Notes under the pieces: generated by a model
The model's input: the letters and a program-made list of their open reading frames with translations, nothing else
Told to the model about the DNA's origin: nothing
Databases searched by the model: none
Source: Iphione sp. A-MEVVRFRX5
Taxonomy: Eukaryota
NCBI GenBank assembly: GCA_976226885.1
Contig: OZ320313.1
Span: 23,250,001-23,314,000 of the forward strand
Direction of reading: 5' to 3'
Length of the DNA stretch: 64,000 nt
Position numbers and translations under genes: made by a program
Shown: positions 5,077 through 64,000 of the stretch, piece by piece
Position numbering within the stretch: the stretch's first letter is position 1
How the letters are laid out: every line of letters begins with the position of its first letter

Positions 5077-7899
5077 ATTATAGCTGTTGTTGCTTTTCCT
5101 TTCTCGTGCTAATCCCTAATCCACAGATTAATGCCACGTTGATCGGGTGTGGGATTAAGGCCACTCCTGGGCGTGGACAGGTACCTCCGGCCGAGCAGTA
5201 AGATACTTGGGAGGTGCAGAGCATGCGGTGAATTTTCAGGCCCTGTATGCTTTGGTTGGCAGATGGCCTGTGAATGCCTATACATGTTCACGTATTTGTA
5301 TTGAAAAGTAGGAGCCTAGCTACTGTTTGCCCACTCACCCACCTCCCCAGTTAATGGTAACATACCCAATAACCCCGATTCTTCCGTTGTGATCAACGCA
5401 GAGAAGGCTTGGTGTCCGGCAAAAAAACACTACAGCTCTGTACCTGTAGGTTTTAACACCGTGTTAATTTTCATCAGTGCAATTGAGAAGGTGTGACAAA
5501 GATTAATTGGCACGTTACTAAAAATAAGATTGTTTTATTCGTACATGTGTCACACGTGATTTTTTCTGTTGTAGACTACTCTTAGGTGCAAACGAATTTT
5601 AGATAAACATGTACATATACATATGTACTGTGTCTGGGAAGTTTATTTTACAATTTTTTTTTCATAAAACCTTTATCCCCACCATTGTTTGTGAGCGTCA
5701 TATTGACAGTTTAAGTTGGACTTTTATTCATCTGGTCAGTGCCAATATCAAGTTTATTGTGCCCGTGACCATTTTGGTAGTAGAAACTCTGTTACGTATT
5801 AAAGGAGATAAATATATCAACTTTGACCGGTGCTTAAAGCAGGTAATCTAGAAAACTTTGGAGCCGTTCTATGGCTTTCTTATCGGTAGGACTTTTTTTT
5901 ATGTGTTTAGATGCTAGACGGTGAGTACACACAGTCCAAAGAGAGTACGGTAGTTAGGCTCAGTTCGTCAGGAAATGTGTGTAGAGGTATGCACCCTCGT
6001 CAGAGCCTTCTTCAAACATACCCAACAAGACAGTGTTAAAGTTTTTTGTTATTTATAAATGAGAACCTGCATCGTGGCATCGAGATGAAACACCAACAGT
6101 GAAACGGGTCCACTTTTTCGTTTTCCTTAACAGTCGCATACCTCGTCTTTCCTCTTAGGTTTCATGTTGAGTAGATCATGATGTAAGTGTTTTTTTCTTC
6201 ATGTACAAATATTAAACTTTTTTCTACAACTACTACACTAACGTGTGCATTCTTCATAGATATATCAAAGGGTTGAGGCCCTTCTATGTGTCAGTTTACC
6301 TGTTATTAACTACATGTAACTGGAAACTAACTTAAGACTTTTGTATATGTTTCTTTGGTTATGTATTTCAGCTGAGCTTGTGTACATGCACAAAATGTGA
6401 CCAGGTACAATTTCTATATTGATTTATGAATTCGATAGTTTCTTTGTGAGGATTTTATGCCTCTATGCTACAAAGAAGTGTACATATGTAATTGTTAAAC
6501 CATCTTGAAATTAAAATGTACGAGTATTGTGTATTTTTCGTAATGTTCAACCACCTATTCGTAAAATTTATATTATGTGAACGATGCGAAATTGTTTCCT
6601 ACCTGCCGATAGCAGATTCAGTCATGGATGTCATTAAAGTCATTTGTTTATTGGAAGAATCTGGCTTGATTACATATTTTGTAAACATTTGTTTAATGAT
6701 ATATAGCACTACGAGCACTTTAATGGGCAAAGTTTATACAAAATGAAAGTCTTCGTCTAGTCGGAATCTATAAACTATATTTTTCAGGCCACCACCGGCC
6801 CGCTGCTGTTCTTTTTATACGTTTCGAAATATGTATGTGTGTAGGGCTGTGGTATTCGGTGTGTGCATCAAGTGTCAAGCATCACTACCCATCCGTCAAC
6901 ACCGAGGTACATTCTATGTGTGCATCCAGTGTCAAGCTTCCGTGCATCAGGCTGTCAGATCAACGAAGAGAGACCGAATGCCTCAGGCACAGAGCCCAAA
7001 GCCTCAGACACAATCCAAAAGTGTTTTGATAGCAGTGTGCTGACACATTCACCCTTGACATTCAACGCTCACATATAAAACGTTACGTAAGATGATATAT
7101 GCGACATTGTGATACAAGAAAAACCACTGATCTAAATATCTATCTATATATATAAGTTTTTATATATGTCTTTTTATTATGTCTGAAGGAACAGGTGCAT
7201 GCAGTACACATCCACTTTTTAAAGGAAAACGTCATTTCTGCCCACAGTAAAGTAGAATGTCACCGTGACTCTTGTCAAGAATATACACAAATAACTTCTC
7301 CTCTCAGTCATTGCGGTTTTATTTGAAAGCGGCCAGCACACATCTCATTTCTTGCCAGTTTCGTCAACAGACCGTAACATGGAGTAGTGCGTATAGAGAC
7401 GATGACAAGAGTAGAAATAGGTCACATCACACACATGCCTCCCCTAATTGTACGATATATGCCTGTGCAGTGTATAAGACGTACATAAAGACAATCACGT
7501 GAAGATGTGGGTCAATGTCTTCAACAGGTCATGGTCTTTCCTCATTCTATATTTCCGGTCCGATCTTTCATACCATCAAAGGTAGTGGTTTCCCACTTGC
7601 TAGTGCACCCGCTCAAACACACACACACACAGAAAACAATTGAATCCCACCTGGAAGACAGTAACCGGAACTTAATGTAATTAAGGATGTTGTCTTGCTT
7701 CATACTGCACTTGTCCAAGATGATATTCATACAGAATTAACAATTGAATGTTATTCCAGCCTTGTGTTGGGATACAGTGAGCTTACTGACCTCTAGTGGG
7801 GGTATGGTAAACAAGTGTGTACCAACACTGTTGGTATGCAAAAGAAAATAGTTCCACATACCAAAAATATGTCATTTATTTAAATGTCAAGGGTAGAAT

Positions 7900-8052
7900 A
7901 AAGACAAAACCAGTACAGTGAGCTATGGGTGATACCAAATACTCATTCAGGTAGCATTATCATACCAAACTCAGCCTTCCAGCCTCGTTTGGTATTCATG
8001 CTACCTAAACTTATATTTGGCATCATCCAAGCACACTGTACCAGTTTTGTCT
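7900..8052. repeat. Imperfect inverted repeat (about 70-bp arms, 16-nt loop)
   Basis: Left arm aagacaaaaccagtacagtg..gataccaaata..ggtagcat..ataccaaac pairs with right arm gtttggtat..atgctacc..tatttggcatc..cactgtaccagttttgtct. Confidence 0.7.
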
Positions 8053-8180
8053 AAATACTGATACATTGTATACTCCTAGTAAATATATAAGTATACTTTG
8101 ACTTCTCCCATTGAAAGGACTAGTTAAAGAGTTGACATATGCCTATATTTGGATAAAATTTAGAGAGGGAATGACATTTC

Positions 8181-8770
8181 TGGCCGATTGTTAGAAATGC
8201 TATTCCACTCTTATTCCAGTGAATAGTTATGCCCTTCATCCCAGTAGTCTATTCCTTGTTGTCAAGAGATGATATTAGGGACCTGTGCTGGGTATAACTA
8301 TTCCTGCTTGGTTAGTAGGTTTATCCCACTCAAACATAGCCAACATACTGTAAACAAAATGGTGGATGGCTGCTCAACTCAGACTTTTAAACACAGAAAT
8401 ATAATGAAAAAAGTTCATTTTAAGTAATCCTATCAGTAGATTTACTTAAATTTAGCATAGACACACCTTCTGGATGTCTTTTTAAGACATTTTGATGCAT
8501 ACTTCCATTAAAATGAATTATTCCTGTGCAGAGCATCATGTTCACTCTAACAGAAAGTCAACAACTTTTAGACTGGTACCCTGTCCTCAAGTTCGTCTCT
8601 CTGAGGGCATGGGTACTGGTCTAACAAACTTCTGTTTACTTCCTGTTTGGAGGAGCATGGAATAACTGGACCAAGGTTATGCCTGCTAATAGGTATAACT
8701 ATTCCCTCCACATTCAGGTGAACAACTGTTCATGGGAATAACTTTTTGGTTTTTTTCTAACAATCGGCCA
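8181..8770. mobile_element. MITE-like element with 17-bp perfect TIR
   Basis: TGGCCGATTGTTAGAAA at 8181-8197 and its reverse complement at 8754-8770. Repeated internal ggtataactattcc motifs. No clear TSD. Confidence 0.55.
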
Positions 8771-9082
8771 ATTAATGTATATCAGTAGCATACATGTTCA
8801 TGGCCATGTTTCTATACATGCATACATTTTAGCTAACGTTGTTAAGTTAAAAAAACATTCATTATGTTTAAAGATCTGGACTGATGAAAGAACCTGTTGT
8901 TTGAAACATGCCACTTTTTACTTGTAGTTTGCTCTGCGCAGTAAAAGAGATTTTATGTTTGCCTGCAAGAGCTTTTGAAATTTTTTCAGTTTTGCAATTT
9001 TTCACTCCAAAGTGATTGTGTATGGGGGTCTGGGCTTGAAATCATATCCCTTTCTCCCTCTCTCTTTATTAACATATGAAAC

Positions 9083-9983
9083 GTCCAAAAAGTGCTGAAT
9101 TTGATGACTTTAGGTCCAAAAAGTGCTGAATTTGATGACTAAAAGTCCAAAAAGTGCTGAATTTGATGACTTTAAGTCCAAAAAGTGCTGAATTTGATGA
9201 CTAAAAGTGACTCAAAGAGGTGAGAGACCACTCTCGGGAGACCCTCTCCAGGGTGAGAGACCATCAAAGACGTCGCAGTGCATGCCTGCGACCACTCTCT
9301 GGCTACCCCTCCAAGGTGCGAGGAACATCACAGACATCCCCGTTGATGCCTCGACATCCCGCGACCACTCTCAGCCTCACCCCTCCAGGGTGAGAGACCA
9401 TCAAAGTCGTCGGTCGCAAAGTGATATTAAAATGTACTAAAAACGACCCTAGGAGGTGTGGTCGTATGGTGAATTTGGTCGGAAAGCAATATGGTCGCAA
9501 AGTGATATGTAATCATATGGTAAATGTACTAAAATTGCTTCCGTTCCGACCCAAAATGGTCGCAATAGTCGATTTGGTCGCAAAGTGAGGAGGTCGCAAA
9601 GGGAGTTTCTCCTGTATATGCGTCCGGATATCTCAGTGTATGTACACAGTGGGACGTCTGTTTGCAGACACATCTGGGATGCGGACACATCCCAAATGTG
9701 GACAATTTGAAAAAGAATCAAACTGAAAAGTCATTTTCCAAGGTCGACATGAACAAACATTTGGACTTTAACTGGTCAAATTCAGTACTTTTAGGACTTA
9801 AACTGGTCAAATTCAGTACTTTTAGGGCTTTTACCAGTCAAATTCAGTACTCTTAGGACTTTCACCAGTCAAAATCAGTACTTTTAGGACATTTACTGGT
9901 CAAATTAAGTACTTTTCGCACTTTAACTGGTCAAATTCAGTACTTTTAGGACTTGTACCAGTCAAATTCATTACTTTTAGGAC
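9083..9983. mobile_element. Foldback-like element bounded by inverted arrays of a 31-bp unit
   Basis: 4 x 31-bp gtccaaaaagtgctgaatttgatgact.... at 9083-9206 and 7 x 31-bp tttaactggtcaaattcagtacttttaggac at 9767-9983, which is the inverted relative. The interior has further repeats (ctccagggtgagagaccatcaaag x2, ggtcgcaaag x4). Confidence 0.65.
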
Positions 9984-10094
9984 ATACACCTTGGAGAGAG
10001 AGAGAGAGAGACAGAGAGATTCTGAACTGCAGATGATTGATGCAGAACCGAGCATGTCCCGAATCGGGACATTCGACTGTATGTGTGTGTATGT

Positions 10095-10345
10095 TAAAAC
10101 TATTGTGCCAATCACAAAGAATTACACCCAAATCTGTAAAAATAGTCGGTTTTTTAGCCGACCGTAAAGAATTATGTGCGATTCTGTTAAAGCGTTATGC
10201 TTTTGTGCCAGTCACAAGAAATTCTTACCAATTTTGTTAAAACGGCATTTAAAAAAAAAGCCAACCACAAAAAATTATGCCTGACTCTATTAAAACAATG
10301 TGTATTTCGTTCTGATCACAAAGAATTATGCCCAAATCTGCTGAA
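10095..10345. repeat. Degenerate tandem array, roughly 50-60-bp unit, about 5 copies
   Basis: Recurring ttaaaac...tgtgccaatcacaaagaattatgcccaa-like units. Confidence 0.55.
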
Positions 10346-10419
10346 ACAGTGTTTTTTGTGAAACTATAGTGTCCCCTCCTTCTGTGAACTGCTATTCATC
10401 CATGGGCATCCGTAATCCA

Positions 10420-10581
10420 GAAAAAAAATGACATTCCTCGTTTTTGGTCTCCGGACACAGAACCCAGAGCACAGAGCCCACACAGATGGAAATATGTTGA
10501 GAGTCACAGAATCGTCCATGCCCACACCACACAGTCCAGGCTGCAGGAGAAATTTTCATACACATGGAACGCGGGCTTTTA
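10420..10581 (+). mobile_element. Right-end fragment of the MITE family seen at 24692-25249
   Basis: tttttggtctccggac and ggagaaattttcatacacatggaacgcgggctttta align with ttttcggtctccggac and ggagaaaatccatacacaaggacaccaggcctta at 25090-25251. Confidence 0.6.
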
Positions 10582-12182
10582 ATTCTTACGTCACTTTAGA
10601 AGAAAAATCTGGTTTCTCAAGTTTTCCATTTGCCATTTGAAGCAATGCTAATCTATTTGAGCATTCTCACAAAACACTTAGTTCACGGAACCCAGTCACT
10701 GTCATCATATACATATACCCACTACATTCATGATTTTGTAAGATAAATGCTCAGATTTATACCATGATGTAATAAAATGCACACTTCCTAGTTTCGTAAT
10801 GCAGACTGCCTTGATATTTTAAGAAAAAAAGTACAAGTAAGCCTAAAAGAGCTCAAATTAGTTTTAGACCTAAACAACACAAACAGACGTCTCATATGAA
10901 AACTCACGCCTCATATGAAAAGATAACTTTTTAGTCAATATTGTTCATGGAAATTGATAAGGTGTAAAATCCAGCGTGAAGCCCGTGATGTCCAAAGTGT
11001 TTCTAAAGTTAGTCCACAAAACGGTATTCCAGATAAACAGGGAACATAGATATCCTCATGTCCAATATGTATACTTGTCTGCAAAGCACAATGTTGTGGA
11101 TGAGTTTAATAGTCCATCATACAAGTCAGATGTATTTACATACAAGAGAATGCACACAATCTTGAACAAATGTCCTTATATATCCACCCACCATAGTTAG
11201 GTTTCTTCGAGGTAAATATCCTAAACTACCGACTGACTGGCAACAATCAAATGTTCCACACGTAACGTATAGCATTACAAATAGTCACATGATGCAATTA
11301 CAAAATTAATCCGTTTTCCTATCTTAGACCTTTCCCACTTTGCTTTATATTAAATGAATACTACGCAAATTTCACAGTCATAACGTACAATGTATCTACA
11401 TGTATAAGTATTGTCATTGCTAGGCACCCTATTTTGTACTATAAAAAGAACAGCGATTTCAGATTGAAGTTCCCACAAACATTGGTTATATTCTGCTTGA
11501 ACAAACTATACAATGATCCTGGTTCACAATATGATTTGCTTTACAGGATTGATTTAAAGCTCCATTCGACACGTCTTTATTTGGTGTATATATGTTGCAA
11601 ACTTCAGCTATGTTTCTTCAGTAGATTTTATTGCTGTGACATGACTCATAACCCACCGCTTATCACTATAATTCTACATTTATCGGAATATAATGGACTG
11701 ACGTATTGGAAACAATAATTACATGTATACATGTACATGTATATGATGTGCATGATGTCATAGGAATTAACGGGAAGTACTCGTATATCAGATGTAAAGG
11801 AGAAACCATGGTGCTAGAAGCTAAAATTCTAAGCAAATAGCTTCTTTATGCTTTAGAAAAACACCATTTCTTGTTGCACAGTGGGAGACCAGAATACACT
11901 GAATTCAGAACGGTTACGTTTTTTTCTGCTACCGGATAGAAAAAAGTGGATGTTCACGGGATTTGAACAAGTTTTTTGAGAAAAAACCGCTACCGTACTT
12001 CAGTAGAATTATTAGCAATCATTTATTTGGTTGTTGGACGTCCAAGATTCAAACATCATAGGCACAACAAAGAGAATGTCTTTCTCAATGACTAAACACT
12101 ATGACGTTGTTTTTCACTCACATGGTATATATTGTACACTGGCTATCTGTCACATTTTCTTGGTTTTTGAGTCCACCTGAAT

Positions 12183-12737
12183 TGCTATCTCCAAGGCAGG
12201 GTATTGTCCGCACAGAAATTTTGGTGTGATGCGTGCAGCCCGGACATCGCCGCAACAGGTGGCAGGTTCTATCCCCATGTGCGCAAAATATATGCACTGT
12301 CTTCCTGATGTGTGTGTGTGTATATGTGTGTATGTGTGCTGTCTCACTGGATTCCTGACAAATTTGTGTAAGTAATGTGTTTTTTGTGCAGATCTCATTG
12401 AATTCCTGTCAAATTTGTGTAAATTATGTGGGATTTTTTTTTCAGATCTGACTGAATTCCTGTCAGATTTGTGTAAATGATGTGTTTTTGTGCAGATCTC
12501 ATTGAATTCCTATATTTTTCTACTCTATTCTGTTCTATTCTATTCTATTATCAGTCTGCACGAAGTGGTGGGGTCCGGGAAGACCGGATGACTAGCGATC
12601 ATCCCGCATGCAGCAGGTGGGGTGTCCGGATCATCCATGCACATGGGTATAATTGTAAATTAACTGCTTGGACTGGACCTCCCGCTGTCCATGCAAAAGG
12701 TGGCGGATGCAGAAGGTTTGCATCCTTGGGGATAGCC
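12183..12737 (-). mobile_element. Non-autonomous derivative (MITE) of the element starting at 59371
   Basis: 12570-12737 is the reverse complement of about 59371-59545 (e.g. ggacctcccgctgtccatgcaaaaggtggcgg vs ggacctcccggtgtccacgcacaaggtggcgg). Imperfect TIR pair TGCTATCTCCAAGG (12183-12196) and CCTTGGGGATAGCC (12724-12737). Confidence 0.7.
12343..12511. repeat. About 51-bp tandem repeat, about 3.3 copies, inside the 12183-12737 element
   Basis: Units ctca(c/t)tg(g/a)attcctg..aaatttgtgtaa...ttttgtgcagat start at 12343, 12394, 12448 and 12498. Confidence 0.85.
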
Positions 12738-57228: not shown

Positions 57229-59719
57229 CTGTGACTGACGAATCGTGACCAAGCCGAACCGGTTAGAGTAGCGCCATATTCACTTCCCTGTGATCAGCAC
57301 AGCATGTGAGCAACCAGCTGGACAGTATACTCGGAGGTGTTTCGTGGCTCCTGGTTTCAGGAGACTGCTTGACTCAGTGGTCGTAAAATGCTCGAGTTCT
57401 AAACAGTTCGCAACTAAAGTACTTTAGGTCTGCTAGGCGAGCTTTAGTTTTTTGTGAGAGATGTATTGTTTCTATACCTGTATTTTGTAAGACCTGGTAA
57501 ATTATTCTTTTAGAGGTTAATAGGTCCGATTATTTCTTGACATTTGTGTCTAATTCAAAGCCTGTTCAAGATGATTCATTTTCTTGAAGGCTCATCAGTC
57601 TGGTTACTGAACAGTTCCATCCTGGAAACAAATTCCCCCTGACCTACTTCCTAGGTAATATTTGACCGTTTCCCTGAACAGTTGCCTAGGACATTTCCTC
57701 CCGGATATTTTACTTTAGGCTTTTCCCCGGCGCTCTCCCCCCCCCCCCCCATTTACTTCTCTAACATTCCCCGCAGACCCCCTTCCCCATGAGCTATCCC
57801 GACTACAAATCTGTAATAACATCGTTTTCAGAATATATGCCCTGTATCTTTTAAGGCAAATGGATAATGAAACAGGAATGAAGTAAACAATGATACATTT
57901 CCTCGGCCCTCCTTATTTTTTCCCTGTGCTGCATAGTGAACACCTTATATGAAAGTTTAATTGAGGCAAACCTATACATATCTTGAAGTTATGTAAACAA
58001 TACATCATACAAAAATATCATTAGAATATCTAAAGAATATTTGGAGGGCTTTCGCCTAAATTTAACATTGCTCATTTTCCTAACCTGAACACCTTTGACA
58101 TCTTGCTGTTAGGTGGATGCGTAGGTCAGCACATAGGGGAAAACAACATGAGGAAGAAATGTACAGGCAGCCTTTCCATTGACATGTGGATGTATTTTTG
58201 CTTTGTACACCTAGTCACTCAAACAAGCATAGTAATTATTGCTGGATATGTGATACATTGATTTCAACACCTGCACTTATCAGCCTGGCTGTTTGGGGGC
58301 TATTTTGTCTATGAGATTTTGTACATGAGAAGGGATGGTGCTGGAGCGTATGCCTTCAGGAGAATATGCAAATGTTAAGTCCGGGAGAAGGCTTAAAGGA
58401 AAAGTTCAGGCAGAATCAGGTCAATTCACAAACTATGATGGATAGGTACTGATCCTCACTTTACTCACAAAAAGAAAAATCTGTTTGGGGTACCTAGTCT
58501 TATCTATGATGTACTACAGTAAAGAATTCAGGATTTCAAGTTAACCTCAGGTGTAGTTTGTAGTTTATGACGAGTTCAGCTTGCCATATGGGAGCGTCTA
58601 TCACCCGACCCTCCCTTCAACCGCGCTTTTACAAATTGTTATGGCCGACCATCAAGAAGCCTGCCAAGTAGGGTGAAGATGAGATATACCACCTCCGAAG
58701 CCTCCGAGATCTCAATGCTAATAGATCAGCGATACTCTGACTTTAATGTCAATATCGTTATGTCAATATCGTTGCAAACGATTTACACAAATTTAACCTT
58801 CTAGGATAAAGAATAGGTTTCCTATTTCCTTACCTGTATTTAGATTGATAGTAAACTGATGAAAACACTGAAAGAGACAGCCATTTGGGTGTAACAGGTT
58901 TAAATCAGGTTAATATGGTAGTGAGTCATTACCTTTCTAGCAAGTTCTTTGTTTCATGACTTTGCGCGATAGTCTGTAGAGACAGCCGATATATATATGG
59001 ACAGTTTTAGGCGTTTTTGCAACCGCTTTCCTGAAATTTTGTAGGGTTCTTTTCCTACACATATAAACAGAAGCTGCCTGCTAAATGGTTAAATGCATCT
59101 CAGCTGATCTTTCTATCGGCAAGTTGCATTAAATTCATCTGGAAGCTAAATGCAGCTTTATTTTTTACACTTTCCTCGAGATATGCTGCGTGTAAGCAAA
59201 CGAATGTACATTCGTGCACATAGTTTGTAATTTTTATTCAGTTTGACTTGGGGTTAACCCCATGTAGTTCTCGCTACTAAACGTAATCCAGATAGCCTGA
59301 AGTGTTTGGTTCAGTATTCAAAATAAACTCTAAGAGGCACTTCATATTGACCTCTCTTCATTGGATTTAAGCGCTATCCCCATAGACGCGAACCTTCCGC
59401 ACCCGCCACCTTGTGCGTGGACACCGGGAGGTCCGATCAAAGCCAAAAAGATAAAACTATCCCCATGTATGCGAACTTCCCGGACACGCCACCTGCTGCG
59501 TGCGGGACGATCGGTGTTGGTCCGGGAATCCCGCACCCCGCCACCTCCACGCCACCCTTTGCGTGGACATAACTGTGTCAAATCGCTCTCGCGCGCGCGA
59601 GAGACGCCGAGATTGACCCACATCTTTCGGCGTTGTTTACTTTGTGCGGACGCTGGGGTGTCTGATCGCTCGATATTTCGTCAACTTTTACTCGTGTTTA
59701 GACACCGAAATATCCAATC

Positions 59720-59918
59720 ATGGGCCGCAAGAAGCGAGCAACTGATCGTCCAAACCCTCTCACAACGTGCTCGGACGCTGAGGTGGATTTCTTCATCAAA
59801 TGCGTGGAGAGAAGGCCGGTAATCTTTGACCCCTCTAGGTCCGATCACAAGGACATATTAAAGGTTCGCCAGGCTTGGCAGTCCGTGGTGAACGAGATGG
59901 ACATGGAAGGTTTAGAAG
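59720..59918 (+). CDS. MADF (Myb/SANT-like) domain gene, exon 1
   Basis: FFIKCVERRPVIFDPSRSDHKDILKVRQAWQSVVNEM matches the MADF pattern LI..V..RP.LWD.....YKD...K..AW..IA.EL. Donor AAG|GTACGT, phase 1. Confidence 0.75.
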
Positions 59919-60929
59919 GTACGTTTTTTTGATCGGACATACCAATGTCCAAGCGAAAAGTCGACTTTGATTTCGTGATATATAAATGTTGCCAAAGAAT
60001 CTTTTATCATGTGAGCTGTGTGTGTTTGTGGTAGCAGTAGGATACTAGCCATTATAGGTTACATACAGCAAAGAAACATTCATCTTTTGAAAATGAAAAG
60101 ACAACTTGACCTATGCAAATGAGGTCATTAGTTCAGGTGTCACCACAATGTGTTATATGTATGTGATTGATTTTTGATTTTTAATTGTCCCTGCATGTGA
60201 CATTATCCCTGCACTGTTGTGGTAAGTAGAGTAGACATTTTTGTTAAGTGCACTGTGTGTTCTTTGCTCCTTTTAGATTGAATTTTGTTATTGCTGAATA
60301 TTGTAATCATGTTATTAGTATGGTTAGACAGGAGGCCATCTTGTGTCCTTCTTGAGCAGCAAGGCAGCAAGTGGCATTTTTTGCAGAGAGGAGGAATTTT
60401 TTCCAATTGGATGAAAGTGAGTACACCATTGCTATTACATTTGTGTTATATTATAACTTGTACACCTGTGGCATATGTTGGCTAATGTTTGAACTGGTTT
60501 TTGATAATTTCTGTCATGTATTTGAGGAAAATGAGATGCACACTTTCTAGAACCTTCCATGAGCTAGGTTGCACCCTTGGGATGGAGAGAGTAGACATGT
60601 GTCCCATGATGTTGGCAATAGATGTTTAGCCTGAACATTACATTGTATGATATTGTTGTTGTAGATGATGTAGTACTGTTGCAGACTATCAATTACTTGT
60701 GTGCACAGCTGTATTTGGTAGAAGATACTAGCATGGTGTACTCCATGCATCAGCATTCTTAGTCTGCAGTGTGTAAGTAGTCAGTTAGTATTTGCCAATG
60801 TGTTTCAAGACATGTTATGTACTGGCAGGTGATGTACTAGGTTATGCACTTGTGCATTTAGGAAAAATGTTTGATGGTATATGTCATGTTCTTAGCAGAC
60901 AAAATGTTGTGAGACCTGGTTTCTTTTTG

Positions 60930-62025
60930 TGGTTTTTTTTTCATGTTGTGTGATTTTGACTCTCTGGCCAAACTGTACTGGTTGGTCACCCAATGTATGT
61001 GTATATTGGAAAAATGTATGATGGGGTTTGTCATGTTCAGAGCTACCAACATATTTTTTTTCATATTAGGATGGTGTGTGCCTTTGTCTCTGTGGCCAAC
61101 CTGTACTGGTTGGTCACCCACTGTATGTGCAAATGGCAAATATGTATGGGGGGGGGTTCCTGTTCAGGGCCAATAATTTTTTTTTTTTTTTTTCATGTTA
61201 GGATGGTGTGTGCCTTTGTCTCTGTGGCCAACCTGTACTGGTTGGTCACCCACTGTATGTGCAAATGGCAAATATGTATGGGGGGGGGTTCCTGTTCAGG
61301 GCCAATAATTTTTTTTTTTTTTTTTCATGTTAGGATGGTGTGTGCCTTTGTCTCTGTGGCCAACCTGTACTGGTTGGTCACCCACTGTATGTGCAAATGG
61401 CAAATATGTATGGGGGGGGGGTTCCTGTTCAGGGCCAATAATTTTTTTTTTTTTTTTTCATGTTAGGATGGTGTGTGCCTTTGTCTCTGTGGCCAACCTG
61501 TACTGGTTGGTCACCCACTGTATGTGCAAATGGCAAATATGTATGGGGGGGGGGGGGGGTTCCTGTTCAGCGCCAACAATTTTTTTTTTTTTTTTTCATG
61601 TTAGGATGGTGTGTGCCTTTGTCTCTGTGGCCAACCTGTACCGGTTGGTCACCCACTCTGTTTTATGCATGTGTATATAGACAACATATAATCAGGATTT
61701 GTGTTATGTACATAGCAACCAACTGCTTTTAGGAACAGGTTAGGGTTTTTCTTCCTCTTAGGGTAGTGAGTGTGCTTTGTCTCTGTGGCCAACCTGTACT
61801 GGTTGGTCACCCACTGTGTGTGCATAGGGCAAATATGTATGGGGGGGGGTTCCTGTTCAGGGCTACCAATTTTTTTTTTTTTTTTCATGTTAGGATGGTG
61901 TATGTTTATTGTCTCTGTGGCCAAGCTGTACTGGTTGGTCAAACACAATGGGTGCATATGGCCAACATGTATGAAGGGTTTTGTCATGTTCAGAGCCATT
62001 TTTTTGTTTCTGATTTCATGTCAGG
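60930..62025. repeat. About 132-bp tandem array (about 7-8 units) in intron 1 of the MADF gene, each unit with a 10-bp hairpin, a G run and a T run
   Basis: ggatggtg starts at 61069, 61201, 61333, 61466 and 61604, with further diverged units on both sides. Confidence 0.92.
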
Positions 62026-62074
62026 ATACTTTATGTGCACAGGAATGTTTCACTACTGCAGTGTCTGACTGTAG

Positions 62075-62242
62075 ATTTTAATTTTTCTAGAATGAAGCGG
62101 TTTGGGCTGGACCCTAAAGATCCGGCATATAATGCCAAGCGATCAAAGATGAGCAGGGAGGAGGACATTAACCGAGACCCTATAGGTACGCGCTGGAAGG
62201 CCTCGGAGGATCGGCGCGAAAGGCGGCGACTGCGCAAGATTG
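62075..62242 (+). CDS. MADF gene exon 2 (start uncertain: 62075 keeps frame, 62091 does not)
   Basis: Open frame DFNFSRMKRFGLDPKDP...TRWKASEDRRERRRLRKI. Donor ATTG|GTAAGT, phase 1. Confidence 0.6.
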
Positions 62243-62567
62243 GTAAGTTACTGTCTTTGACCCTACAATGTATTACTCTATCCTTGTGCAGTATCAAGAG
62301 AGGGTATTGGAAAAGGGGGAAAGGATAGTATGGTACCTGATTATGTTGAGAAAAACTGCACATACCTCCTTTCCCTCCACCAAATAGCCAAGTGTATGGA
62401 CTTACATCTTGTAAAGATGATTACAGATTAAAATGAATATGTTGCTCACTACATATGATTAACCTTATATATTTCTTAAGAATAAACTTGTCTTGTGGCC
62501 TTCCTACCTGAGCTACAAAAGGAATGATTCCTATTTCCAGTATTGCAACATTGAAAATGTATTTCAG

Positions 62568-62732
62568 CCCGGGGTGAAGAGCCCGCGAAAGTGAAGCGTG
62601 GAAAATATGAGAGCGCGGCCGCCTTTGCATTCCGGGAGGCCCGCTACCGCGCCGACCTCCAGGTCTGGGCCCTCAGCCAGGGGGAGGGCGACACCTCCAG
62701 TGGGGAGAGCGAGGAGGAGGAGGGGCAGCATG
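62568..62732 (+). CDS. MADF gene exon 3
   Basis: Acceptor atttcag, open ARGEEPAKVKRGKYES...ESEEEEGQH, donor CATG|GTAAGT. Phase 1-1, GC-rich against AT-rich introns. Confidence 0.75.
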
Positions 62733-62919
62733 GTAAGTTAATGTGTTGGTTCATTCTGCTTCAGTTTTTTGGGGAGGGAATTTGGAGGGGATTCCTATGT
62801 ATACTGACACTCATATCAATTATACTTGTATTGTATTAACCATAAATGGAGACACCCTGTTGCTTTGCAAACCACATTAATTGAATTCTAATATGTGTAC
62901 ACCCATTTCTTTCTTGAAG

Positions 62920-63270
62920 GTGCCGGTAATCATGCCCTAAATGGGGCCTATGTCGCCCCTCCTCCTGCTGATGAGCAGGTGCTCCAGCCGCCCCAGGCAC
63001 AGCCCCCACCACAGCAACAGCAGCAGGAGCAGCAGCAGCAGCCCCCACCACAGCAACAACAGGAGCAGCAGCAGCAGCCCCCACCACAGCAACAACAGCA
63101 GGAGCAGCAGCAGCAGCCCCCACCACAGCAACAACAGGAGCAGCAGCAGCAGCCCCCACCACAGCAACAACAGCAGGAGCAGCAGCAGCAGCCCCCACCA
63201 CAGCTCCTGCAGGAGGCAGCCGAGGAGGAGGAGGAGGACGACGACGACCAGCAGGAAGCTGGTAGCAATG
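62920..63270 (+). CDS. MADF gene exon 4, Gln/Pro-rich repeat
   Basis: Acceptor tttctttcttgaag, open GAGNHALN...(QPPPQnEQQQ)x5...EEEEEDDDDQQEAGSN, donor AATG|GTAAGT. Phase 1-1. Confidence 0.75.
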
Positions 63271-63695
63271 GTAAGTTGCTGTCTAGAGTTTATGTCTTTT
63301 CAGTATGCTTGCTGTAGTCTTCGTGTATATTTCTACACATAAAGGTTTGAATGGTGGCCGTCATGTAGTACATACAGTTAAGTTTCATATGTAACTGGTT
63401 CTATAGGATATCACTTAAATTTAGCACATTTATGTGCATATCCTTCTGTAGTATTTATCAGTAATACCAAAAAACAACTCTTAAAAGTGAAGACATTTAT
63501 TGTCACAAACTACCAAGCCAACTGTTACAGGCCCGCACGGCACCCCCTTGTATAAAAACCATATCCGCCGGGTCACACACACACACATGCAACCCCACAT
63601 GAACACACACAAGCACTAATGCCCTATCAATATGGCCCATAATGTTGTCTTGTCCAACTCTAAAAACAAGGTTTTCCCTGTGCTTAATTTTACAG

Positions 63696-64000
63696 ATGCA
63701 GGCAGCGCCAGGTCGTCCACCAGCGACACCACGGTCGACCTCGCTGCTGCCTACCTCGACCTGGAGGCCCGCATGGACCGCTTTGATAAGGAGGTGGTGT
63801 CCATCGGCCGGCGGCTAGATGCCCTTGAGCATCTAGCCCGCCACCGTCGCCGGCCGTTGGACGCCAACGACAAGCGCATCTTGTCGGAGCGCTTCGAGCG
63901 CATCAAGGACACGACCGGCCTGACCAAAAGCCAATATGAGGAAGTCGTCCTGGACGTGCTAGCTGTGGAGGGCCGTCCAGGACTTGGCCTGCCCCCATAA
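63696..64000 (+). CDS. MADF gene terminal exon 5 (coiled-coil-like segment), stop TAA at 63998-64000
   Basis: Acceptor aattttacag, open DAGSARSS...YLDLEARMDRFDKEVVSIGRRLDALE...GLPP*. The five exons sum to 1188 nt, giving 395 aa in frame. Confidence 0.75.

Follow-up and report, generated by a model that had tools for sequence, protein, structure and literature searches.

The 64,000-nucleotide stretch of DNA analysed here (the window) comes from Iphione sp. A-MEVVRFRX5 (GenBank assembly GCA_976226885.1, contig OZ320313.1, positions 23,250,001 to 23,314,000 of the forward strand). Its last 4.6 kb, positions 59370-64000, most probably form the left part of a young three-gene PIF/Harbinger transposon, a reading to which we give a probability of roughly 0.78. 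This element would consist of a transposase gene on the minus strand, a MADF helper gene interlocked with it, and an orphan gene which is nested in the first intron of the helper gene and appears to recombine between sublineages of the family. An earlier note on the same DNA had proposed a young Harbinger-type transposon, possibly "an unusually elaborate autonomous element", and both proposals are borne out by a transposase, a right inverted end, TWA target duplications and many near-identical copies.

Ends, flanks and copies of the element

The element measures 9,704 bp and extends from window position 59370 to L061:5073, where L061 is the DNA directly 3' of the window (10 kb read) and L061:5073 thus lies 5,073 bases past the window end. 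Copies were searched for in a genome of 1.18 Gb, of which C1 and C10 are contigs and in which the window corresponds to C1:23250001-23314000. Within the window, the part read for the element was 59000-64000. The following features mark the ends:

59367 to 59369, no strand: left target site duplication TTA; the right flank of the window copy is TAA (L061:5074-5076), hence mismatched
59370 to 59392, plus strand: left terminal inverted repeat AGCGCTATCCCCATAGACGCGAA; the right end (L061:5051-5073) is perfectly complementary
59404 to 59569, plus strand: subterminal direct repeats, three times CGCCACC-N4-TGCGKG plus a second repeat, TATCCCCAT

With 23 of 23 bases complementary, the ends form the terminal inverted repeat of a PIF/Harbinger element. 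The left terminus had been noticed before, preceded by TTA as stated here, with its start placed one base too far to the right (59371 instead of 59370). The DDE_Tnp_4 transposase and the inverted terminus that the earlier note suggested looking for downstream are both present within 5,073 bases of the window end. The 3-bp flanks are the same on the left and right in 18 of the 21 copies for which both are known (TTA or TAA, GTA once), and the left flank is TTA or TAA in 25 of 28 copies; this is the TWA target duplication of PIF/Harbinger. The window copy, with TTA on the left and TAA on the right, is one of the three mismatches among the 21. A point change could have produced this mismatch, and so could exchange between two copies.

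Within the 9.7-kb element, CGCCACC-N4-TGCGKG is confined to the two ends, with three occurrences in the first 200 bp and two in the last 85 bp; these repeats are candidate binding sites of the MADF protein. The observed/expected ratio of CpG amounts to 1.34 at one end and 1.09 at the other. Exons have values of 0.2-1.15, the lowest being that of the Q/P repeat in exon e4 (see below), and introns 0-0.4. Thus, the subterminal repeats and the preserved CpGs from which a transposon had been deduced are both confirmed.

At least 30 full-length copies of 9.1-10.06 kb were recognized by pairing of end coordinates, and they are 99-100% identical at their ends. Searches with the 5' 560 bp, with the 3' 513 bp and with exon e5, in each of which the best 40 candidates were scored, gave at least 30-40 genomic matches apiece, 94-100% identical. 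A 34-nt transposase pattern occurs 74 times in the genome, and there are 48 exact matches to the first 38 bases of the left end preceded by TTA, which suggests a family of about 75-90 copies. Copy counts, end pairing and identities of 94-100% together indicate that the family is young and mostly full length, and the 99-100% identity between copies would imply recent movement. The material compared comprised 30+30 partial loci, two further 10-kb copies, two module-only loci and 50-bp flanks.

Transposase and MADF genes, probably interlocked

Apart from MADF exon 1 and most of the following intron, both backbone genes lie in L061, outside the window:

59720 to 59918, plus strand: MADF gene exon 1, encoding the first half of the MADF domain in 66 codons plus one base; donor GAAG/GTACGT (a slash marks the junction)
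59919 to 64000, plus strand: start of MADF intron 1, which has a total length of about 4.9 kb, ends at L061:812 and holds the tandem array and the nested gene
L061:813-1293, plus strand: MADF exon X, PF10545 positions 44-83
L061:2442-3609, plus strand: MADF exon Y, 388 codons, stop at L061:3609
L061:4395-4022, minus strand: transposase exon 1, donor AG/GTAAGT
L061:2334-1305, minus strand: transposase exon 2

The transposase matches DDE_Tnp_4 (PF13359) at L061:1707-2333 on the minus strand with 74.5 bits (E=9.5e-21; cut-off 24.8), which places it in the PIF/Harbinger superfamily. All of its 844 relatives contain PF13359, and HARBI1/ALP1-like relatives in fish, molluscs, echinoderms and cnidarians are about 55% identical. 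In the window copy the frame is interrupted by a TGA at L061:1704-1706 (minus strand). This codon is CGA in 72 of 74 copies and TGA in two, the other one being located at C1:150440311, and the stop is thus essentially private to the window copy, which would need transposase supplied in trans.

Profile, sequence and fold searches were run exon by exon. Exon 1 of the MADF gene covers positions 1-37 of the 84 positions of PF10545 with 24.5 bits (E=3.6e-5; gathering score 22). Exon X complements this half, and on its own scores 18.8 bits, slightly under the same gathering score. The acceptor TTTGCAG/TT at L061:812/813 restores the frame of exon 1, which ends in phase 1, and the consensus donor of exon X (GC/GTAAGT) joins in frame to the acceptor of exon Y at L061:2441/2442; the splice sites of X and Y are kept in L084, an older copy described below. 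The transposase intron (L061:2335-4021) encloses exon Y, and the intron between X and Y encloses transposase exon 2. Since each gene has an exon in an intron of the other, the two would interlock on opposite strands. The C-terminal stretch of Y (FCLSLVQDLLDLPPQK...) can be aligned to positions 2-23 of BESS; we claim a resemblance only, and the gene is possibly of the MADF-BESS type.

A related Harbinger element (L088) was found at positions 7091-11242 of a 19.4-kb contig of ENA assembly ERZ25084518. Its transposase core is 60% identical, and its transposase and MADF genes are convergent. The MADF domain is split there at the same profile positions, 1-37 (33.3 bits) and 44-84 (27.8 bits), by an intron of about 570 bp that contains neither e2-e5 homologues nor a nested gene. 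Because the split is identical and the intron short, we consider the position of the MADF intron to be ancestral and the intron to have been expanded to about 4.9 kb in the element studied here. The transposase intron of L088 harbours a 144-aa open reading frame (ORF) on the opposite strand.

In line with Harbinger elements already characterised, the transposase would be recruited by a MADF protein bound to the subterminal repeats and would then cut and paste at TWA sites.

A nested gene and its diverged versions

The expanded first MADF intron contains, behind an array of 132-bp units, a gene of four exons encoding about 323 aa:

60943 to 61973, no strand: tandem array of 132-bp units, 7.6 copies, directly 5' of the nested gene
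62091 to 62242, plus strand: exon e2, ATG at 62092; conserved basic head resembling a nuclear localization signal (KRSK, RRERRRLRK)
62568 to 62732, plus strand: exon e3, phase 1-1; acidic tail; splice sites kept in L084
62920 to 63270, plus strand: exon e4, phase 1-1; Q/P-rich repeat and acidic run
63696 to 64000, plus strand: exon e5, stop at 63998-64000; conserved C-terminal helical domain

Differences in array copy number probably explain part of the 9.1-10.06 kb length spread of the family.

Open frames, conserved splice sites and low dN/dS values point to e2-e5 being a real gene under long-term purifying selection. The e2 peptide has 120 genomic matches of 41-100% identity, mostly open and full length from residue 1, and the acceptor TTTTTCTAG/A at 62090 is invariant in four subtypes of the element together with the adjoining ATG (/AATG, 62090-62094). 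Exons e2, e3 and e5 are free of stops in all eight subtype representatives. Among 30 copies, e3, e4 and e5 are each intact in 27-29 (e3 is open in 29), and the length of e4 varies between 276 and 396 nt, always as a multiple of 3, in 27. The 27 type pairs that have synonymous differences yield dN/dS values of 0.16-0.35, with dS reaching 1.4; at dS 0.7-1.4 the ratio is 0.18-0.35. The length of e4 varies in frame even between copies that are otherwise 99-100% identical. When exon 1 of the MADF gene is joined to the conserved acceptor, the MADF TGA overlaps the nested ATG (ATGA, 62089-62095), which resembles coupled termination-reinitiation.

The C-terminal exon e5, in which 52 of 100 residues are invariant across seven subtypes, is predicted to fold into three helices (pLDDT 66). 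It has no match among 1.84 billion representative proteins and no usable one in the ESM Atlas, and a Foldseek search of its model against the PDB gave nothing below E=0.5. A distant e2-like exon of 42% identity is followed, in C10:18443600-18446600, by a tandem repeat that is open for 448 codons. This 448-aa frame (C10:18445493) was considered as an intron-less retrocopy and rejected, as it is a tandem repeat open by chance.

The nested genes fall into at least seven types that appear to sit on backbones of about 99% identity. Type A comprises the window copy, which served as the reference, and 17 further copies (L001-L017); the other types are represented by L024 (A'), L018 (C1), L021 (C2), L085 (D), L086 (E) and L087 (F). 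L085 is a complete copy of 9,840 bp with flanks TTA/TTA. The older copy L084 (type B, C10:107992801-108002700) has a backbone of about 91% identity and is 5'-truncated, lacking exon 1 and e2; its transposase and e3-e5 frames are still open. In 40 copies that match the window copy at 99% or more over the 5' 560 bp, e2 falls into identity classes of 100, 94-98, 78, 76, 74 and 72%. Along the element, identity between the reference and type D is distributed as follows:

59370 to about 60940: 97-100%
Nested introns: 87-93.5%
Nested exons: 66-72%
X, Y, transposase and 3' end: 99.0-99.5%
Non-coding DNA between Y and transposase exon 1: 97.3%

Between the same two copies, third positions differ by 1.4% in the backbone and by 50% in the nested module, and non-coding positions by 1.3% and 11.5%, respectively. 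Base composition alone was rejected as the cause of this divergence because like-for-like classes differ 8-36 fold.

The two copies are diverged from about position 61990 on, and the 5' border of the variable module would accordingly be placed in or just after the 132-bp array. At the 3' side the border depends on the type, being situated within L061:1-400 in E and F and at about L061:400-650 in D. Trees of individual segments contradict each other with strong support, which argues that the module recombined repeatedly between sublineages. In the e3 tree, E groups with F (100/99) and C1 with C2 (97/95), with A, A' and B falling together, unresolved, on short branches. The e5 tree joins D with F (99/97) and unites A, C1, C2 and A' in one clade (100/100), the tree of the intron between e4 and e5 places C2 with E and F (100/100), and in the exon X tree only B stands apart. 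Likewise, e3 of L084 is nearer to type A than are those of types C, D, E and F, even though L084 is the outgroup by its backbone. Such mosaics would be accounted for most economically by template switching in the course of gap repair, and the tandem array may favour such switching.

The third protein would be a nuclear accessory or regulatory factor, probably localized to the nucleus. Its expression may depend on the MADF promoter and alternative splicing, with use of the ATGA overlap and an ATTAAA signal, or on a start in or near the tandem array. One may speculate further that the nested gene encodes a specificity or counter-defence factor whose old allelic lineages are kept by frequency-dependent selection, for example through escape from a host repressor or through type-specific self-regulation, while recombination homogenises the transposase, the MADF gene and the ends. 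We regard this last idea as doubtful; if true, it would give a cut-and-paste transposon of eukaryotes a variable module like those of phages.

Alternative readings and comparison with known systems

Seen from the window, exon 1 and e2-e5 can also be read as one five-exon gene, a MADF/polyQ fusion of 395 aa that serves as Harbinger helper. This was the gene model of the earlier note, and its exon blocks do have real GT/AG borders and phase-1 junctions throughout. The 395-aa frame was likewise reproduced (66+1+5+50+1+54+1+116+1+100) with an acceptor at 62075. However, the AG needed for it (62073-74) is present only in the subtype of the window copy, types D, E and F reading TGTGG or TGTGA, and the invariant acceptor at 62090 joins exon 1 out of frame (GAA TGA). 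Moreover, the fusion would hold MADF positions 1-37 only, the other half being encoded by exon X, and L088 joins the two halves across its 570-bp intron without any such exons. We therefore judge the fusion to be highly improbable. What had been taken for an intact gene is MADF exon 1, correctly recognized as MADF-like, joined to a different, nested gene, with the MADF gene itself continuing in two exons past the window; the supposed atypical third helix, RWKASEDRRERRR, lies outside the domain, whose true second half is in L061:813-1293. Chaining of exons across such an element yields plausible but false fusion genes, and annotation should take this into account. A stronger competitor, though still one to which we give less than even odds, is that e2-e5 are alternative 3' exons of the MADF unit which share its promoter, with the ORF starting at the ATGA by reinitiation or leaky scanning and polyadenylation after e5. 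An invariant polypyrimidine-AG directly precedes the ATG, but its invariance is weak evidence since the flanking DNA is conserved anyway; stop and start overlap, yet an upstream frame of 67 codons is long for reinitiation. An ATTAAA poly(A) signal is found 305 nt 3' of e5 and no obvious separate promoter was seen, although either a promoter or a 5' non-coding exon might be contained in the tandem array just upstream. By contrast, an ordinary single-copy host MADF gene with a miniature inverted-repeat transposable element (MITE) upstream, or a domesticated gene, is already refuted by a transposase found in at least 74 copies, by matching ends and target duplications in at least 30 of full length, and by an identity of 99-100% between copies. 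A domestication in progress, as had been considered, is not supported either, the gene being present in at least 74 mobile-looking copies. The related MITE reported for the window does exist and probably belongs to a related Harbinger family:

12184 to 12736, minus strand: MITE-like relative of both element ends, about 553 bp, 76% identical to element bases 3-177 and 70% to bases 9597-9700

The divergence of the nested exons might alternatively stem from an exon-targeted process, such as conversion by spliced RNA or cDNA or targeted hypermutation, instead of recombination between old sublineages. Between types, the nested exons are 28-38% diverged and their introns 7-13%, and the mismatch frequency jumps sharply at exon borders, from about 0.10-0.12 on the intron side to 0.22-0.37 inside the exons, with no gradient in the introns. 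The exon:intron divergence ratio, however, is steady at about 2.5-3.2 in five of seven comparisons with the reference (it is 1.2 for L021), the position of L084 in e3 relative to its backbone requires recombination, and no exon-only matches were found among the 40 scored candidates. The private single-copy variants among the 17 near-identical type-A copies (window 62140-64000 and L061:1-1500) also argue against such a process. They occupy 29 of 888 sites in nested exons, 17 of 681 in the backbone exons X and T, and 9 of 1,749 in introns and spacer, which corresponds to odds ratios versus introns of 6.5 (p=7e-8) for nested exons and 4.9 (p=7e-5) for X and T. In these copies CpG sites are mutated at 10-15% of sites, mostly by transitions. 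Because backbone exons are enriched as well, the exon excess is largely a general mutation-rate effect of CpG/GC-rich exons. Exon-targeted mutation and RNA-templated conversion were largely rejected on these grounds, private mutations being 5-6.5 fold enriched in all GC/CpG-rich exons, and we consider an exon-targeted process improbable. The CpG/GC effect does not account for the module being 8-36 fold more diverged than the backbone. The excess of CpG transitions in GC/CpG-rich exons suggests germ-line methylation of the elements.

Several points weigh against the three-gene element that we prefer. The BESS match of exon Y reaches 13.3 bits (E=0.076), below the cut-off of 21, a word search with exon Y retrieved no relatives, and the exon is frameshifted in L084. 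The ORF in the transposase intron of L088 has no similarity to exon Y and so does not bear out a conserved interlocking. All splice junctions, a promoter for the nested gene and transcripts from the interlocked pair are predictions from sequence, and what the third protein does is conjecture. Finally, full-length sequence covers the window copy and two others, and eight subtype representatives were aligned.

Harbinger elements are textbook two-gene transposons. Zebrafish Harbinger3_DR is an example of a PIF/Harbinger element that combines a DDE_Tnp_4 transposase with a Myb/SANT/MADF partner, and such a second gene is present here, too, in the form of two MADF halves (24.5 and 18.8 bits) on in-phase exons. 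Insect PIF/MADF pairs are likewise two-gene Harbinger elements with MADF partners (PMC9710019). In the Caenorhabditis element Turmoil/Harbinger-1M_cIno, another two-gene PIF/Harbinger with a MADF partner, the genes are arranged head to head (PMC13668399), whereas those described here are convergent and interlocked, with a MADF intron of 4.9 kb that holds a third gene. A literature search found no paper describing a third Harbinger gene. The element would thus depart from the two-gene Harbinger in three respects: interlocked genes, a conserved third gene in an ancestral MADF intron, and at least seven diverged, recombining versions of that gene. What is new is a hypervariable, recombining nested module on a near-identical backbone. 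Being young and mostly intact, the family offers a workable system to study the role of accessory genes and the exchange of modules in DNA transposons.

At the protein level, the transposase shares with HARBI1/ALP1-like proteins about 55% identity over the DDE_Tnp_4 core and the same Pfam pair, PF04827 and PF13359. Many of those proteins are annotated as host genes; by contrast, the gene studied here is flanked by inverted ends and occurs in dozens of near-identical copies. The MADF protein resembles MADF-BESS proteins of the Drosophila Adf-1/Dip3 type in its N-terminal MADF domain and its C-terminal BESS-like stretch, although the latter scores below the cut-off and the long Pro/Ala-rich repeats have no counterpart in those proteins. 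The combination of a conserved core with shuffled, deeply diverged versions of an accessory module recalls the modular mosaics of tailed phages. This likeness is one of pattern only: the element described here is a eukaryotic cut-and-paste transposon, and the mechanism that generated its mosaics would probably be template switching in gap repair.

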